The notes under the pieces are model-generated. The model searched no databases. It was given only the letters and a program-made list of their open reading frames with translations, and was not told the DNA's origin. Made by a program: the position numbers and the translations under genes. Positions 19,875-54,810 of a DNA stretch of 64,000 nucleotides are shown here, one piece after another. This DNA is from Epiperipatus broadwayi. Taxonomy: Eukaryota > Animalia > Onychophora. Every line of letters begins with the position of its first letter. The stretch's first letter is position 1. Location: positions 17,484,001-17,548,000 of the forward strand of contig JAQFVV010000001.1 of assembly GCA_028023455.1 (NCBI GenBank), read 5' to 3'.

Positions 19875-20082
19875 TTTAATATTTTTTTTATTCTGGTCTG
19901 GTTTAATTTTAGATTTGGGGTAGTTTTGATTATATATATATATATAAACAAAAATGCAAGTTAAAAAACTTGCTAACGCTTGTATTTATGTCCACAGATG
20001 GCGTCCTACCAAAAACACCTATCAAGCGTATTTTCGTTTACATAAACGTCAGAGTAGTTAGTATTCACTATCTCTAACTATA

Positions 20083-20140
20083 ATTCCACTTTCAGATCAT
20101 GATTTCAAGCTATTTGCTATCGTCAGTGAAAGACAGGAAT
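20083..20140 (-). ncRNA. Type I hammerhead ribozyme (copy 1)
   Basis: Reverse complement of the 20421-20478 motif. Confidence 0.9.
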
Positions 20141-20420
20141 AAAGAAACTAGATCTAAATACAAACTCTGAGCATTTATGAAACAATTTCTATTCAGCTTG
20201 CAAGCGTGAATTTTTTAGACACGTAATGTCTTCAAACTCAGCATAGCAAACCAGATAGCTATATGGGTCTGATCTCAGTTCAGCATCACCACATAGTAGA
20301 AGCCTCTGCAATCTATATCATTGCAAGAAAGACATTACGTGTCTAAAAAATTCACGCTTGCAAGCTGAATAGAAATTGTTTCATAAACGCTCAGAGTTTG
20401 TATTTAGATCTAGTTTCTTT

Positions 20421-20478
20421 ATTCCTGTCTTTCACTGACGATAGCAAATAGCTTGAAATCATGATCTGAAAGTGGAAT
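20421..20478 (+). ncRNA. Type I hammerhead ribozyme (copy 2)
   Basis: auucc-ugu-cuuuca CUGACGA u-agc(aaaua)gcu-u GAAA ucauga U C ugaaag-u-ggaau: intact core, palindromic stem III, 6-bp stem I plus internal loop and 5 more bp; predicted cleavage after C20466. Confidence 0.92.
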
Positions 20479-20819
20479 TATAGTTAGAGATAGTGAATAC
20501 TAACTACTCTGACGTTTATGTAAACGAAAATACGCTTGATAGGTGTTTTTGGTAGGACGCCATCTGTGGACATAAATACAAGCGTTAGCAAGTTTTTTAA
20601 CTTGCATTTTTGTTTATCATAAATGTACCTTTGAGGTCTTTCTTGCAATGATATAGATTGCAGAGGCTTCTACTATGTGGTGATGCTGAACTGAGATCAG
20701 ACCCATATAGCTATCTGGTTTAGTTTGAAGACATTACGTGTCTAAAAAATTCACGCTTGCAAGCTGAATAGAAATTGTTTCATAAACGCTCAGAGTTTGT
20801 ATTTAGATCTAGTTTCTTT

Positions 20820-20877
20820 ATTCCTGTCTTTCACTGACGATAGCAAATAGCTTGAAATCATGATCTGAAAGTGGAAT
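20820..20877 (+). ncRNA. Type I hammerhead ribozyme (copy 3)
   Basis: Identical motif; predicted cleavage after C20865, 399 nt from copy 2. Confidence 0.92.
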
Positions 20878-21796
20878 TATAGTTAGAGATAGTGAATACT
20901 AACTACTCTGACGTTTATGTAAACGAAAATACACTTGATAGGTGTTTTTGGTAGGACGCCATCTGTGGACATATATATATATATATATATATTCTGACTG
21001 TTACAATATATATATATATATATATTAGTCAGAACTAAAGAATGTCAACAATTTTGTGAAACAGACTTGAAATAATATCAATAAATAATTCATGCATTGA
21101 TTTATGAAAATAAAATGCTGAAAAAATGAAACTTATTATATATTAATAGTGGTCTTTATAATTCAAAAAAGATTACTTACATAAATATTTGGAAAATCTT
21201 TAATATTCAACAGAGAATATCTTTTCTCCACTATTGTAAAAAGACATTGTGATGGAATAATTATGAATAGTATCTAATGCTTTAAAGGCTTAAAAGGTAG
21301 TTATTATAAAATTATATCTGTAAGCTATAATTTGGAATGGTTAAAATCTTATTACATTTGCTGCCTAATGTCAGGCATAATGCTAAGCATCATGAGATAT
21401 TATTTATTTACATTTTCTGACTTTTGTCTTTGTACCCTATCAGATATGACATTTCTGGCTCATTTAGTATAACATGGTGGCCTGATATATGACAGACCGA
21501 TTTATAATTACATATTTATCAATCTCCTGACTCAACATGAATTCAATCCAACCAATCTTTTTAAAACTTTTATTGAATTCAAAGGCCTAACTATGGATAA
21601 TAATCCTATAGAGATCCTTGAAACCAAAAAGGTAAAGATTTAACAGAATAATAAATGCATAAAAATTAGCACATATCCACTAAATTAAATGCAAAAATAA
21701 AAACTGGACAATAGTTAAACAGAATTACAGTAGGGCAGAATAACTAAATTAAAAACAAGTTATGATAATCTGAATAATAATGAGAGACAAAGTAAG

Positions 21797-35200: not shown

Positions 35201-38200
35201 ATGATTAATGGGATTTTTTTTTTTACACGCAGATCTCTTATTACGAAAGAGAAGAATGTAGCTATGACAACTAAGATGAAAAGAAAATAATAACAAGAGA
35301 ATGTTATGCGTGGAAATGAAAAGAATCTTATTAATAAAATACACAATATAGGAAAATGTATATATTGTATTTTATAACTTAATATGTGAAATTAAAGAAT
35401 CTTTAGAAAATATATATCCTGTTAACCTAAATTAATTTAGTTAGCTAATAATTATTGATTTTTTAAATAATTTATGATGTTTAAATGTATATTTATATAT
35501 CTATTTCATTTTACTATTTCCTAAATATATTGCTTATGTATAAAATACTATTTTTAAATTTATATATATATATATTTCATTCTCTCTACATGTAATACCT
35601 TATAATTTTTTTTTGATGCTATGATACGCGAATATGTAACTTATTTTTGCAATTATTCCATGCTATGTATAATTTTACAGAAGAGTGAGTGACTTTTGTA
35701 ATAGTAATAATTTTTGAAAGCATAAGTATCATATGACTTAAGACTTTTATTTTTGCTTATTATTTGAATAAAATTGAAGTTTTACTTAGATACATCATTT
35801 TTGAGATCTCTATAAAATGCACTTTGGTTCATACAGTTATTTTGGAATATATATAAAAGTACATTGCAAACAAATTTTATGATTGTAGGATATCAGGTGG
35901 TAAAAGAGCTCTTTTGATAAATTGACATGTTTAGTATTAGTATTGGGTCTGAGCTAAAACATGTGATCAGATTAAAGAGGAATAATATTTATGACTGTTC
36001 TCATCATTTGTCACAATAATCAATGCTAAATGTGACTGATGTTTAAGGTAGTTGTGATAATATAATCATTTTATTAGATTAATATCTTTAATAACATAGG
36101 AGAATAAAGATTGGAAGTGATTTAAATGAAATCGATGCTATATTGGTTCAAATTATGTAAATTACAGAATCATTCAATTGATAACTTGTTTAAATCTTTT
36201 ACATCTGATAATATATGATGAAGTCATCTTTATTACAGTTCAGTATCATAAATTCTGTATGATGTGTATCTACAAGATACAATGTACTTGGTCAAAGAAT
36301 TACAAGATGAGATGTGTGTATATGCCAAAAGTTCTACAGGATGTTTTTTATCATATCATTTAAAATCTATTCTGCTATTTTTTATTATAATTTTTTAAAT
36401 CAATATATAGGTAGAGAGTATATTTTTTTATTGAATTACTAGATTGGTTTGATTAATAACACAATAGTTTTTTTTTCTGCTGAATTTTATGCATTGTGCA
36501 TTATACAAAGAAATTTTGTTTTATAGATTTAAAAATCTATGATGACAGTAGCATTAAAGATAAAATTTTGAGTACTCAATGAACTTTTTTCTTGACATAA
36601 TTGGCTTATTATCAGTTTACATAATAAAAAAAGACATCATTACTTAGCAATAGATTTTTTTTTCTATTTAAGTTATTAAGTTTTTTTAAAAAAACATTAT
36701 TGTATTTTTACTTGTTATGTGGATTAGTGAAAATATGGTTATTTAATTTAATGAATATAACTCAGAATTAAGAGAGGTTTTTTTTTTTATGAAAGATTAA
36801 TGTTTGATTCGTAGTGTGTTCTCTAATAGAGACATTATTAGTTACGAACTTGCTAATAGAATTGTTCTTCTGTGGACAATATCCATTATGTTTTACTTTC
36901 AGAATAATAAGATTTAATATGTTTTCTTCACTACCTTATGTCTTATCCACATAAATATTTTAGAAAGTCGAAAGAGAATATGTATTACTCATCAGATATA
37001 TACATATTGTACCAGGTTGTACCATCTTGCTGTTTTATTCACCCAGTTACAACCTGGTTTTAACTTAATTTACCATAATGTATCTTCTAATTTTTAGCAG
37101 TACTTACAGGTATAAATGATTAATGATTTTTGCTATGACCAAACCGCATCCTCATTCATCTGAATCAATAGCAAAGTATTAGAAAGATATGATTATATTT
37201 CCTAGTCATCCCCCTCCAGATAATATTATTTTATATTCTATTTTTCTACAATATCAAAATTATATCTTAAAAAATTAACAACTTGAGACAGCTTTTATTT
37301 TATTTTTTTAAAGAAACCAGTGTTCAGTGGATCATTTCTTTGAACACCATTGTCCAAAGGTTAATTAATTCACATTTTTTTTCTCTTTTTTTGTTTAGGA
37401 GATTCTTCCCTACGCTTATATCATTAAATAATTGAGTGTACAAGTAGTCTTTCATCCTGGAAATTAAATGGCTGAGTTTTCTGAATTTTAGTTTCAAAAT
37501 GGCATTTAATAAACAAGTAATAACATTAATCAAAATACAAATTATTCATTCATACATATCTTTACTGAACATTATTAACATATACATAGTACGTCATTAA
37601 AATAAATATGAATAAAATGTTACAAAATACAAAATTAATCTTAGATATCAATAGTAATAATAAAATTTTGGTTAATCATAACAATTAAGCAGTTTTAGTC
37701 AGTTCATTAAGAGTTTTTCAATTAAAAGTTAAACGGATATAGAGAGCTCTCATTCATCTTACAGGGAATATTTATTTTTAATATATTTACATGTGATATA
37801 TATCTAGATCATGGCCACAGATTTTAAGTTTCTTATACACACTACTTTTATCCATGACAAGGTGTTTAAGATCAAGGGCTCGTCTCCACAGTGAAATAGA
37901 AAGAAGATATCAACAAACATATCTGGAGCCTTAGTAATGTACTCAGTTTGAAACTTCCCTGAAAGTAAAGACTACCATGTGGTAAATTATTCTATACCAT
38001 TCTCTGGACTTTTTTTCATGTGATCTGCTACTCTATGAAAAAAATACAACTCCAATAGTAGTCCAATCAGCAACCAACAATGTAGCAAACATTCCTCTAT
38101 ATCATTAAATAATATAATAACCACGCAAAAACTAAAACAAAAGTTGACAGGGTTGTCTTTTATACTCTATGGCCTGTCTTCCAGGCATGTATCTTGTTAT

Positions 38201-38933
38201 ACTTTTTCTCTCTTCATTCTTCAGGAATTTAATCACCAGCAAAACATTTTATTTCAAAATTGATTATAAGCTGAAATACATAATTTTCTTTTGTTCTAAA
38301 TATAACACTCATTTCTGGCTGTAATATATTTTCGGCAGCCAAACAAAATGTATACTTTATAAGAAAAAAACTATGTTTAATACCTACAATTTATTTTTAT
38401 AATATTTCTACATTTTTATTTATTAAGTTTCTAATTACATCAATCCTCTAATTACCCTTGCTGTTGATCGACATTCCGATTGGCCATCTTTAATTAGTGA
38501 GAGAAGAGATATAACACCTTCCCTCCTTTTCTAATTCTAGATAATTATCTTGATTACATTTTTTTCTCTTATCTCTTTTAAATCTTCAAGTATATATATA
38601 TTATCTGCGTGGTCAAACAAATAATTTTCTTGCTTATTAATGAAACAAAATTTATCGTTTTTTTATTTTTCTAGAAGTATATATTTTCTTTCAGCAATCT
38701 CCACCCCCCCTCTTCCCAGAATGCCAAATATGATAGTACAAACAAAATTAACGGTACTATATATATGTACATATTAATCCGAAGTATGTTGATGATGAGA
38801 GGCACATTTTTTTCATTAAAAGTTTGCCTAATATTCATTTAATAAATTTCATAAATATTTTAGAAACCGAAAATTTGCAATTATTAATATTAATACATTG
38901 CACAGGCTTAAACCTGTGTTTATATATGTAATA

Positions 38934-39004
38934 TAGGCGGGATTCGAACTAAGACTTTTACACGACTCACTACTCTCAGTGCCATCTCATATTGCTGAGC
39001 CACC
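38934..39004 (-). promoter_or_regulatory. tRNA-like Pol III internal promoter (SINE-type head)
   Basis: Minus strand GGTGGCTCAGCAA (A-box-like) ... AGTTCGAATCCC (B-box); does not fold as a full cloverleaf. Confidence 0.7.
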
Positions 39005-39031
39005 TGATCACACACATGTTGAAAAGATAAA

Positions 39032-39088
39032 TAATCACCAATATACGTATTTCATGCTAAACCAGCAATCATCAGTTGGTCTAGATTA
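39032..39088 (-). ncRNA. Type I hammerhead ribozyme (third family)
   Basis: uaauc-uag-accaa CUGAUGA u-ugcu(gguuu)agca-u GAAA uacgua U A uuggu-gauua: intact core, palindromic stem III, stem I 5+5 bp with a 3-nt bulge; NUH=AUA. Confidence 0.9.
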
Positions 39089-39883
39089 CTATCCTCACAC
39101 ATATATATATAATCAGTATTCAGCTTTATATTAAGATATCCAATCTTCATACTTTAATGGAAAGGCTTCAAACTATTCCAACTCACAACTTTTCAGCCTT
39201 CCATTTCATTGAAAATCTGATGATGGAATGTTCAAAGCCCTTGTTAGTGCCAATGTTGTCATCCTACCCATGTTGACATATTAGTCATTCTGCCCCCTCA
39301 TGTACAGGAGAATAATCCATTTATACATACATATGTGAGGGATGGGCAGACCTTTTATACACTATTTATATAAATATTAATATTAAAAAATACTGTTATT
39401 TTATCTTCCAGAGATTTTGTAATCGCAGTAATATTTTTGTTTTAGAAAAATCTGCAAAAATATTTGATAATACTTTATAGCAGTATTAATTGACTATTTT
39501 GATTAAATATTTTAATTTATACGATTTCTTTGTACAGTGTTAGTAGTGTTTGAAGCATTTTGCTGCTGAAAATTGAATTATATTTATATTTGAGATTACA
39601 TTAAAAACAAGCAAATAATATACAGTTGTCTATACAATAGTTTTATTAATTTCATTTTAATCTTATTATAAAATTCAGATTTTTATTTCTAAAATAGTGT
39701 TAAAATAAATAAAACATTTGGATTACTATTACTATTTTGGTGGAAAACCAGACTTTGCATTAACAATTGATGTATTCTCTGTAAGAATAAACCACATTGC
39801 ACACACACACACACACATATATATATATACCATAGTAAGAGTTTATGATTATATTTCGCTTCAATTAAAATAATTGATTAGTC

Positions 39884-40121
39884 GTGCGCTAGTAAGTAGC
39901 TAAAGAGAAGTTTGAGCTTTAGTGTTGATGTATTAATATATGCTAAATGCTTTATTCATAGCTGAATGAGTTTATAGCTGAGTTATGAGATAACTCATTT
40001 AGCTATGAATATAAAAGCATAAGCTTTAAAAAGCGCTTAGCGTATATTAATACATCAACTAGCGTATATTAATACATCAACTAGAAAGTTCAAACTTCTC
40101 TTTAGCTATGTACTAATGCAC
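39884..40121. repeat. Fold-back / MITE-like inverted repeat with an internal ~22-bp tandem duplication
   Basis: gtagctaaagagaagtttga.../...tcaaacttctctttagctat; agcgtatattaatacatcaact twice in the right arm. Confidence 0.8.
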
Positions 40122-43100
40122 CACTCAACAAGTACATACCATAGATAATATATAATAAAATAGTTTTGTATCAAAGATTTAATATCAGAATAGATGATAA
40201 TTGTCTACATATTCTAGTAGAACGTATTTTATTCTATGTAAGATATAATTATTACTTATTCTATGTGGAATAGAATATTATAACATTTGAACAGTTATCC
40301 AAACCAACAATTTTATGAAAAAAAGATTACTGTTTGACACCATTTTAATTTTTTGCCAAAAAACAATTTATGTAGCATTAATAACATTAATAATAAATTT
40401 TTGGATGAAAACAAGTTTTTGATTTTTCCAATAGAAAATACAATCGAGATTGTTAATTTTTGTTATTTTGTCTTTTTTTTCATACTTTTACTACAATTTG
40501 TAATAGTATTTATTGAAAAGAGTTCTGTAGGATAGTGACTAGGATAATGGCCATGCCATAAAAATCAAATTCAAAGCATTTTTTTTTTTTAGATATACAA
40601 GAATTTTCGGTGAACTTAGGACCATATATTACTGAATGATAAGCAAATAGCTGAATATTTTTTGCTGAAAGAGAATAAAAATTTTAAATAAACTGTCGAA
40701 ATGATGATTTAAAAGAAAGGACATAATTGTCATAGTATAACTTTTATCACAAATAAAGACTATTATGTCACCATAAATAGGTACCGGTTTAATTTATCTT
40801 ACTTTTTTAAAATTATGAAGTTTAAGGACATGATATTTAGGCATTCAGAATATAAATTAAGGATGCATTATACATAATTAAAATGCAATAAACATTTAAT
40901 AGACAAACGAGAGAATAGACATTTATTTATGAACAGTTTTTATATAACTTATCGTTATATATATATTTAAGATAGTCAAAAGGATTGTTTATCTTCTGTT
41001 AAGCTTTATTTTATAGTTTTTTATTTACATGAAAAATCGTCTAATAAATTATTGACAGACCTTCAGTTTTTAAAGACTTTTTAATGCACTATTCTTTAAA
41101 TGTTTTTTAACAGCTTAGTTGGATGTCACTTCTCTTTTTCAAATAAAAGAGCACTCACTTTTCTGCAATAGTTTTGTAGTTAAGATACGGAAAGATAAAA
41201 TATATTTGAAAAATACGTTAAATTGAAGCTGTTAACAAAATAAATACATAAAAAAAGAAAGAAAGATCGAATTTAAATCATTTACGAACAAAACGAAAAT
41301 AAAATACTTTTGTTAAAAGAGAAAAAAGATTTATGTAATTTTTTTCATTTTTTATTTTATTATCGAATCTTGGGTCCAAATGAACAAAGCGCATTGAAAA
41401 AATAAGTATATATATGTTTAAGAAGAAACAATAAATTAGAAAATATGAACGATTATCTATCAAGACACAAAATGAGCGGGCTATTGTTAAAATAAAAAAA
41501 ATCTTTAGTACATATCTGTAAAATTGTAATGGTAGAACAAAAATATTTACAAGTACAAATGCTTTAATCAGCAACGTAAGAAATTACAAATTGCCAAATC
41601 TTATATTATAATGTGTGAAAACATTGAATAAAACTTAACAGATAATAATTACAAAAACTATTATAAATACTGCAATCTTTAATTAATTTCATTTAATTAC
41701 AAAATTGTAAGCAAATGCAGATTTTCTATTCCTACTCTAGAACCATTTATAATAAACATGAGTGTTGAATGAATATCAAGTAATAACACAATTTAATCCT
41801 TGTCTGCATCGATACCATTTTAAACTCAAATCCTCATTGATAAAAATGAAAGTCAGAAAGTGCTATGAATTTGTGAATTAAATCACACTTCACTTTTTAT
41901 TTTTCTATAATAAAAAAAATTAAATCATACTTCACTTCTACCTGATAATTGCTAATTACTACAGCTTTTAAATATTTCAGAGTTCTAATGCGAGATTGTG
42001 GTAACACTGATGATCGTTCAGTCTTTTCAGCTGCACTGCTATTAATAATAACAAAATCCTTCATTTGGGAATCTTTGGAGAAATTACAGATAGTCCTTCC
42101 ATTTTTCTTCCTTCTTTAAATACTTCTATCACTATTTTAATAATTTTGCAGTCATTTTTGATAGTAGAAAGTTAAACAAAAAATTTATTATTTTAAAAAA
42201 GTCTGAAGAGATCAGTATTCTGCAGTCATTAGAAATTTCAAAGTAGTCAAGTACTATTAATCACATCATTGAGTGCTAACTTCTTTTGTACTCTAGTATA
42301 GAGATCATATTTTTCATTAAATGTAAGAATTAATTTTTTTTACATAGTTTATTTAAATATTTATGATTATTTTTACATAATATTTATATAATAATTATTT
42401 AAAAGCAAAAGTATAGATGATTGTACTTGGGTTTTATAGAAATATGTCCTTATTTTTAAAATTATAATAAATTCATCATAATGGTAAATAAATAAATTAT
42501 GATGGTATGATTGATAACATTTTTAAATCACTCTTTAACCAAATTATCTTAATATTTGTGATATTTTAAAATTTATAAATGCAATTTTAAATTTTAGAAT
42601 AAAAGTTGATACATTTATGATGGCTTTAACATTAATTTTGTTATGTTTCAGTGATTATTCTAGTTTTTTTTGTTACATCATTCAATCAGAAAAAAAATTA
42701 TTGTCCTTATTACATATTTCACTTTATGATTATTTCTATATTTTCAATTTAAATATAATTTTTTGGGGTGTTTTTCATTTGTAATCTTATAATTTTAACA
42801 AATCAAATCCAATTTACTATTTTCTAATATAGATTAATTGTTTAATGATTACAAAAATTGCCACTTGGGGGAACAATGAAAATGTGTCCATTAATTTACA
42901 AGTTAGTACTGTTTGTAGTTTTGTATTTATCATTGGCAAAAAGTGAAAGTAAAATAATATTGATTTATTAATTTAAAAATAAATTTCAAGATCTCAATAA
43001 GTACAAAGAAATTTTATACAAATAAAATGACAGTATTGCTAATTAGTAGTTTTTTTTTGTTCTCAGGCTCAAGAGTGCTGGCAATAGCTTTTGTGAGCAC

Positions 43101-54019: not shown

Positions 54020-54450
54020 TGGTTAACCATATACATAAAAATAGCAGACAAATTAAGAAAAATATGTACTCAGTGTAACATCAGAACAGTTTTCCAGAGC
54101 CATACCACATTATGAGGAACTGTAACATATATAAATCCTAAACTTGAAATGCTGAAAAATAAAATTTGCATATATGAAACATCATATGAATGTGAAGAAA
54201 TGTATATTGGTGAAATAAATATTCCCATTGAAAGTGTTTGCATGAAGACAAACTGATGATTAGAAGAAAAAAACAGCTATGTCTGTACCAAGAAACATAT
54301 GTTCAATTGGGAAAATACAAAAATATTGGATAGAAAGTAAAATATACAAATAATATTTTCAAAGAAGCTGCTCACATGACAATGGCAAATGACCCCATAA
54401 ATTAATATAGTGTGACTATGCATAATGTATGGAAATCACTAACCAACTTT
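54020..54450 (+). pseudogene. Degraded Penelope-like GIY-YIG endonuclease remnant (older family)
   Basis: PYIK linker (~54028), CIYETSYECEEMYIGE (~54167), FNWENTKILD, FKEAAH; frameshifted. Confidence 0.75.
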
Positions 54451-54530: not shown

Positions 54531-54810
54531 AGATGGCTCAGTTGGCTAGAGTGTTACCTTAAAATTCAATATTAAAGAATCTAAGATTCCAGGTTTGATC
54601 CCAAGTAAGTATTGTCACTGGTCAGGCCAGCAATATCTGAAGAGAACAATATCTCTCAAAAAGTTGTTCATATACTAACCTGTGTGCTATTACTACTAGA
54701 TGAATGTAATTGAAATATTTAAATAAAGTTACATTTTTCTAAAACATATTAGATGATGGAAATAGTCCAATATATACATATAACTAAAATACCATCATCA
54801 TAAACCTCCA
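54531..54810 (+). mobile_element. tRNA-derived SINE (family B)
   Basis: A-box TGGCTCAGTTGG (54534) and B-box GGTTTGATCCC (54592); body shared with three other copies. Confidence 0.75.

Follow-up and report, generated by a model that had tools for sequence, protein, structure and literature searches.

How can a self-cleaving ribozyme be transcribed when the only promoter-like element of its repeat lies downstream of it? The question is raised by a locus near position 39000 in a 64,000-nucleotide (nt) stretch of Epiperipatus broadwayi DNA (hereafter the window, to which all coordinates refer), in which a hammerhead motif is followed by the A and B boxes of a putative RNA polymerase III (Pol III) promoter, all of them on the minus strand. 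An earlier note on this DNA had argued that a ribozyme so placed is transcribed only from tandem or circular units, and had proposed a circularly permuted monomer of a retrozyme resembling a short interspersed nuclear element (SINE). The first argument held, as the hammerhead does precede the putative Pol III start. Based on contig depth, motif analysis and comparison with published elements, we consider that positions 39372-38893 probably represent a solo, full-length retroposed copy of a very high-copy, non-coding family of the non-LTR retrozyme (LTR, long terminal repeat) or Sm-alpha-like type.

Extent and ends of the repeat unit

Logan contigs from two DNA runs and one RNA-labelled run of the same organism were placed on positions 37600-40400 at 80% likeness. 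In the two DNA runs, the summed contig depth reached 10^5-10^7 over approximately 38890-39385 and only tens to thousands in the flanks, with its maximum in the bin that holds the hammerhead (39010-39103). The family is extremely high-copy. Unique error-free contigs ended at 38912 and restarted at 39346, which is the expected pattern of unitigs that reach up to k-1 bases into a repeat. Moreover, one contig passed from 39370 to 38890 with only two nucleotides (CG) in between and, therefore, both ends of the unit abut in another copy; this joint would fit a head-to-tail arrangement of units, each about 483 nt long, at other places in the genome. The unit is thus about 480 nt long and not approximately 200 bp, as had been suggested, and its GC content is 0.356 compared with 0.22-0.26 in the flanks. 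The (TA)n tract, previously placed at the edge of the element, proved to be internal to the family: a loose-end contig consensus at 39125 follows this copy's own sequence across the tract with a length difference of 2 nt, by which (TA)n was ruled out as the insertion border.

When a 301-nt region and the whole 480-nt unit were compared with the window (blastn, word size 7), no second copy of the unit was found and, hence, the copy is solo, as the earlier note had it. Of the tandem arrays for which that note proposed a search, none of this unit occurs in the window, and the single contig joint would be the sign of them elsewhere. The unit is flanked by 13-nt direct repeats, TAATATTAATATT and TAATATTAATAAT, which agree at 12 of 13 positions. 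When intervals of 480 nt were drawn at random from the window, this likeness was reached by only 21 of 3000 (0.7%). This repeat is target-duplication-like. The insertion target looks like a (TATTAA)n microsatellite, which is why the exact border of the unit is uncertain by a few bases.

The abutting ends also bear on an improbable alternative, namely that an autonomous Penelope-like element is represented here only by its 3' end, a pseudo-LTR piece left by 5' truncation. Heavy 5' truncation is frequent among Penelope-like insertions, and the single hammerhead motifs of animal genomes have mostly been assigned to such fragments (PMC4209133, PMC8557442); in addition, the depth of the 5'-most bin was about sevenfold below that of the next one. 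However, the 39370 to 38890 joint shows that the copy is one whole unit, the depth falls to background exactly at its 5' end, and the unit showed no similarity to the Penelope-like sequence in the window. The context of a Penelope-like element, i.e., a pseudo-LTR with reverse transcriptase and GIY-YIG genes, was not seen either, as there was no open reading frame of at least 80 amino acids within 3 kb of the unit.

The 5' part of the unit is otherwise AT-rich and holds a G+C-rich hairpin (UCUGCCC...CCCUCA / UGAGGG...GGCAGA); the fold of the whole unit was more stable than those of shuffled sequences (z = -3.2). A consensus TATA string, TATAAAAG, occurs at 39359-39352 on the minus strand, 14 nt from the 5' end, and could be an RNA polymerase II or upstream promoter element or a chance match in AT-rich DNA. 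The coordinates of the unit and its modules are collected in Table 1.

Table 1. Positions of the repeat unit, its modules and the related hammerhead array in the window
Feature	Position	Strand	Remarks
Full repeat unit	39372-38893	minus	480 nt, non-coding; delimited by contig depth, stops of unique contigs and the 39370 to 38890 joint
Upstream direct repeat TAATATTAATATT	39385-39373	minus	13 nt, inside (TATTAA)n-like microsatellite; TRF row 39363-39386
Downstream direct repeat TAATATTAATAAT	38892-38880	minus	13 nt, partner of 39385-39373
G+C-rich hairpin	39352-39288	minus	5' part of the unit; minimum free energy (MFE) and centroid folds of the unit
Internal T4	39215-39212	minus	might stop Pol III on its way from the promoter to the ribozyme of the next unit
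(TA)n microsatellite	39112-39101	minus	internal to the family
Hammerhead motif, type I	39096-39023	minus	read from sequence
Helix I, 5' strand	39096-39076	minus	outer 13 nt, UAG bulge 39083-39081, inner ACCAA
Core box CUGAUGA (C3-A9)	39075-39069	minus	read from sequence
Helix II	39068-39054	minus	U·U at 10.1/11.1, four Watson-Crick pairs, loop GGUUU
GAA (G12-A14)	39053-39051	minus	read from sequence
Helix III palindrome AUACGUAU	39050-39043	minus	8 nt; monomer 2 bp + 4-nt loop, dimer 8 bp
H17 (A39042)	39042	minus	predicted self-cleavage 3' of A39042, from hammerhead numbering
Helix I, 3' strand	39041-39023	minus	inner 5 bp 39080-39076 / 39041-39037; end merges into T4
T4 run	39025-39022	minus	at the end of the helix I 3' strand
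A-box-like segment TGGCTCAGCAA	39002-38992	minus	in D-arm-like GCTCAG...GAGA
B box AGTTCGAATCC	38950-38940	minus	read from sequence
3' hairpin CACAGG/CCUGUG	38918-38901	minus	6 bp, 6-nt loop, 8 nt before the end of the unit
399-nt hammerhead array	19944-20972	both	tandem and inverted copies in AT microsatellite
Hammerheads of the 20-kb family	20435-20466, 20834-20865; 20126-20095	plus; minus	sequence reading

The hammerhead motif and its counterpart at 20 kb

The conserved core of the hammerhead is complete (C3 U4 G5 A6 N7 G8 A9, G12 A13 A14, the pair A15.1-U16.1 and an H17 that is not G). In helix III, an A-U and a U-A pair are capped by the loop ACGU, and pairs and loop add up to the palindrome AUACGUAU, a dimer-type arrangement as in the metazoan non-LTR retrozymes. 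The MFE fold of a 75-nt piece (ViennaRNA) consisted of helix II and an open-ended helix I, whose 5 + 13 bp are interrupted by a bulge of one base and replace the 10 bp previously assigned to it, and in cofolding the dimer was 8.9 kcal/mol more stable than two monomers. The description of the motif as an intact type I hammerhead could be retained for the core, the helices, the UAG bulge and the palindromic helix III; at the base of helix II, U39068 stands opposite U39054 and the G10.1-C11.1 pair is absent. The cleavage coordinate proposed earlier, after A39042, corresponds to H17 by hammerhead numbering, cleavage itself being predicted.

A descriptor that called for 5 bp or more in helix I, for the presence of helix II, for a helix III that is short and palindromic and for an H17 other than G matched four sites in the window, namely the motif near 39 kb and three copies of a family near 20 kb. 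In 3000 shuffles of the window there were seven matches, which corresponds to 0.0023 expected per shuffled window. The bare CUGAUGA-N-GAAA pattern is expected 1.7 times per window.

Outside the hammerhead core, the 20-kb array and the 480-nt unit showed no sequence similarity in blastn at the same word size, which agrees with the earlier statement that the two are distinct in sequence. The hammerheads of the 20-kb family share with the present one the core, the U·U at 10.1/11.1, a helix III made of an 8-nt palindrome (AUCAUGAU in the 20-kb family) and a helix I of 5-6 bp; they differ in that H17 and N7 are both C, and the family has no B box. In a direct reading of the two hammerheads, seven helix pairs were changed on both sides (2.2-2.5 with 1.2-1.5, 10.2/11.2, 15.3/16.3 and 15.4/16.4), all of them paired and none broken. 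These compensated pairs support a real, selected hammerhead fold, and the occurrence of U·U in both families suggests a habit of the lineage rather than damage.

The hammerhead and the tRNA-like segment lie within one repeat unit, and contigs of other copies bridge both modules, e.g., one from run X5 that is 143 nt long and covers 38909-39049. Independent occurrence of the two modules in other copies, which would have made them chance neighbours, was not found on the evidence available. Majority variants, meaning the listed positions at which most contigs depart from the 39372-38893 copy, were 38901, 38917, 38918, 38936, 38951, 38959, 38967, 38999, 39082, 39118, 39119, 39139, 39162 and 39191. 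Among the positions listed, the tRNA-like part and the 5' part have one every 10-20 nt and none falls within 39000-39081, where the core of the hammerhead, its helices II and III, the spacer and T4 are located; this is suggestive of low variation in that stretch. A chance association of a hammerhead-like motif with A and B boxes is thus highly implausible. Although loose A+B-box matches (0.52 per shuffled window) and the bare core pattern are both common by chance, the full descriptor is not, both modules belong to one hugely abundant unit spanned by contigs of other copies, and within that unit the depth peaks, and the listed variation is lowest, in the bin with the hammerhead.

The tRNA-derived segment and the putative promoter

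From 5' to 3', the unit is composed of a structured region of 260 nt, (TA)n, the hammerhead, T4, a segment with the A and B boxes and a conserved 3' hairpin. The A box begins 39-40 nt past the predicted cleavage site and 53 nt separate it from the B box. The A-box-like sequence (TGGCUCAGCAA) agrees with TRGCNNAGTGG at 8 of 11 positions and the B box (AGUUCGAAUCC) with its consensus at 10 of 11, and these boxes together with the cacagg/cctgtg hairpin were found on the minus strand as described before. After the 3' hairpin, the unit ends in ...CAATGTAT without an A tail. In the hairpin, most contigs have U-A at 38918/38901 and G·U at 38917/38902, while the present copy has C-G and A-U; this variation is one compensated change. 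The tRNA-like head is reached only after 370 of the 480 nt and, accordingly, the layout is not that of a classical tRNA-derived SINE, in which the head would be at the 5' end and an A-rich or simple-repeat tail would follow.

We did not regard the A and B boxes as significant by themselves given their chance frequency in shuffled windows, and therefore the promoter reading cannot stand on statistics. Neither can it lean on two further signs. A depletion of T-runs was not seen (two T-runs observed, approximately 3.4 expected). The ratio of RNA to DNA contig depth was rejected as a sign of expression: family contigs are included in the RNA-labelled run, yet their share is no higher than that of other repeats, with ratios of 0.8-8.6 per thousand along the unit and 0.4-13 for neighbouring repeats. 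The family shows no sign of special expression because its ratio falls within the range of these repeats; Logan contig depth is a poor measure of expression, and contigs are unable to reveal circles.

These two results weigh against the proposed Sm-alpha-like retrozyme, as do several others. The abutting ends are known from one contig, for which the type of joint was not given. The Rfam hammerhead models were not matched, neither by the whole window at gathering nor by pieces of 401 nt and 91 nt at E<=10. This is a real negative for membership of the model-based hammerhead families, and it fits the published need for special descriptors for retroelement hammerheads with a short helix III (PMC4209133). 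The G10.1-C11.1 pair has been described as highly conserved and is retained by the minimal hammerheads of Penelope-like elements (PMC4209133), and because U·U stands in its place, the activity of the present hammerhead is uncertain. On the promoter side, the A box agrees with the consensus at no more than 8 of 11 positions, and at 38999 most contigs of the family depart from it; loose A+B-box matches are common by chance; the Rfam tRNA model was unmatched in the same searches; and ARAGORN gave no tRNA call, whether at its default setting or relaxed as far as -ps80 (the 'tRNA-Thr' at 38982-38894 that appeared at -ps70 and below was implausible and disregarded). The internal T4 would halt part of the Pol III transcription before the next hammerhead. 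Finally, in blastn at word size 7, no Penelope-like sequence in the window shared the tail of the unit.

Some of these observations can be accommodated by an explanation that we regard as a possible but less probable one, in which the tRNA-derived segment does not work as a promoter but is a relic or belongs to the 3' tail as a module, transcription comes from read-through or another promoter, and the hammerhead is perhaps weak or inactive, as the helix II mismatch would allow. The segment could be an old tRNA-SINE piece in a Penelope-type terminal region that was kept, together with the hairpin, for recognition by the reverse transcriptase. Its degenerate state (no tRNA call, a T-stem that is broken on reading, the incomplete A box), its position near the 3' end and unlike the 5' position in SINEs, and the internal T4 all agree with this. 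Furthermore, animal retrozymes have been stated to be without promoters of their own and dependent on read-through (PMC7761336), and the TATA string at the 5' end could offer another start. The near-perfect B box is, however, free of majority variants among the positions listed, while one per 10-20 nt was found nearby, the D-arm-like GCTCAG...GAGA is retained, and a loose end at 39001 revealed another subfamily with CAGTGGTA at the same A-box/D-arm place. Sm-alpha is, moreover, a precedent for Pol III-driven hammerhead elements (PMC6765202).

Elsewhere in the window, a clearer tRNA-derived SINE head was observed at 54534-54602 on the plus strand, with an A box (TGGCTCAGTTG) that has one mismatch and a B box (GGTTTGATCCC) 58 nt downstream. 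A CUGAUGA...GAAA match 280 nt upstream of that head (54253-54295) had no supporting helices. The 480-nt unit itself is located in a repeat-rich, gene-poor stretch, as its flanks hold other repeats of much lower copy number (38258-38727, 37600-37787, 39856-39949 and 40138-40231), with a summed depth that exceeds the single-copy level by a factor of 10-100. On the plus strand, 40038-40084 is a perfect tandem duplication of 22 nt (2.1 copies).

Proposed working, relatives and significance

Cleavage is predicted inside the unit, at a distance of 331 nt from its 5' end and 149 nt from its 3' end, and the inserted unit is therefore not bounded by ribozyme cuts. That the copy ends at 39372 and 38893, and not at the ribozyme site, is the reason why its hammerhead is upstream of its own putative promoter. 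The initial interpretation as a circularly permuted SINE-like monomer is therefore supported in that the copy is permuted relative to a monomer cut from ribozyme to ribozyme and belongs to a SINE-like, ribozyme-bearing family; because its ends are defined and flanked by a target-duplication-like repeat, we regard it as an ordinary retroposed unit and not an arbitrary fragment.

From these features we infer how the family may work as a Sm-alpha-like retrozyme. In head-to-tail arrays, Pol III would start near 39015, approximately 10 nt upstream of the A box, and transcribe across the junction, so that the transcript would reach the hammerhead of the next unit and then the T4 at the end of that hammerhead's helix I. 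Paired hammerheads would cut the multimers into unit-length RNAs with the tRNA-like head at their 5' end, and these RNAs would perhaps be ligated into circles and copied back to DNA by a Penelope-type reverse transcriptase. That the family may depend on an enzyme of the Penelope type is suggested by the hammerhead type, the lack of an A tail, the AT-microsatellite target, the target-site duplication of more than 4 bp and the probable tandem copies, judged by features described in previous work (PMC7229834, PMC8557442, bioRxiv 10.64898/2026.07.22.740005). The 39372-38893 copy is most likely silent with respect to the ribozyme, as its own putative Pol III promoter misses its hammerhead, and it would make at most a hammerhead-less RNA of approximately 140 nt that ends at a flanking T4 (38874-38871).

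A bolder version, which we think rather unlikely, is that the family is a self-sufficient Pol III retrozyme. With the promoter past the cut site and T4, the tRNA-headed RNA would be circularised and copied by a Penelope-type enzyme from the 3' hairpin, and the hammerhead with U·U would be a variant that is specific to the lineage and active. Permuted solo copies would then arise from a single turn of the circle, and tandem arrays from several turns.

Among the known systems that come closest to the Sm-alpha-like retrozyme proposed here are Sm-alpha and Sj-alpha of Schistosoma, which join a tRNA-derived Pol III promoter to a hammerhead (Ferbeyre et al. 1998 and Laha et al. 2000, via PMC6765202 and PMC2770079). 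They share with the present family a short, non-coding, very high-copy unit with a tRNA-derived promoter-like segment and a type I hammerhead, and both are dispersed and, in the present family probably, also tandem, tandem copies being needed, as here, for the promoter to transcribe a ribozyme-bearing unit. For Sm-alpha, it was reported that single copies cannot propagate (PMC6765202). In Sm-alpha, the promoter precedes the hammerhead and the cleaved units carry it at their 3' end (PMC6765202), whereas in the 480-nt unit the order is reversed, the hammerhead (39096-39023) preceding the A box at 39002, and the promoter would be at the 5' end. Sm-alpha is also shorter (335 nt compared with approximately 480 nt), its heads are called as tRNA-Gln while the tRNA-like part of the present unit is too decayed for tRNA finders, and the hammerhead here has U·U at 10.1/11.1 and no Rfam match.

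The metazoan non-LTR retrozymes provide a second comparison. Animal retrozymes have type I hammerheads, low GC, target-site duplications of more than 4 bp and a published size of 170-400 nt (Cervera and de la Pena 2020, PMC7229834). The present family resembles the non-LTR retrozymes in its non-coding, low-GC unit, in a helix III that has just 1-2 bp and closes with a small loop of palindromic sequence, and in the duplication-like repeat of more than 4 bp; they also occur in tandem copies and their mobilisation by Penelope-like elements is presumed (PMC7229834, PMC7761336). It differs from them in its size, slightly above the published range, in the tRNA promoter-like segment and in ends that do not coincide with the ribozyme site. 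A Penelope origin has been described for hammerhead retrozyme-type elements (bioRxiv 10.64898/2026.07.22.740005), and Penelope-like elements target microsatellites (PMC8557442). The minimal hammerheads of the latter (Cervera and de la Pena 2014, PMC4209133; Lunse et al. 2017 via PMC6765202) have the same core boxes, an unpaired base after A9 and a palindromic helix III, presumably act as dimers and are missed by standard models, as here. However, their helix II is 7-8 bp long compared with 4 bp in the present motif and their helix I 4-5 bp compared with 18 bp with a bulge, the G10.1-C11.1 pair is absent here, and no Penelope gene adjoins the present motif.

In the retrozyme paper of 2020, there is no mention of Pol III or of SINEs (PMC7229834), and a retrozyme-like family that pairs a U·U hammerhead with a putative tRNA-type promoter right after the cut site is on this account a new combination among the known ribozyme elements. 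Animal retrozymes have been reviewed as promoterless (PMC7761336), and Sm-alpha, the one known exception, is confined to schistosomes in the literature consulted. The value of the finding lies in the family rather than in the 39372-38893 locus, which is one probably silent solo member. If the proposed working is true, a promoter directly behind the ribozyme cut site would show how such elements can secure their own transcription, and the U·U that two unrelated families have in common where helix II begins would widen the range of natural hammerhead variants that are missed by standard models.

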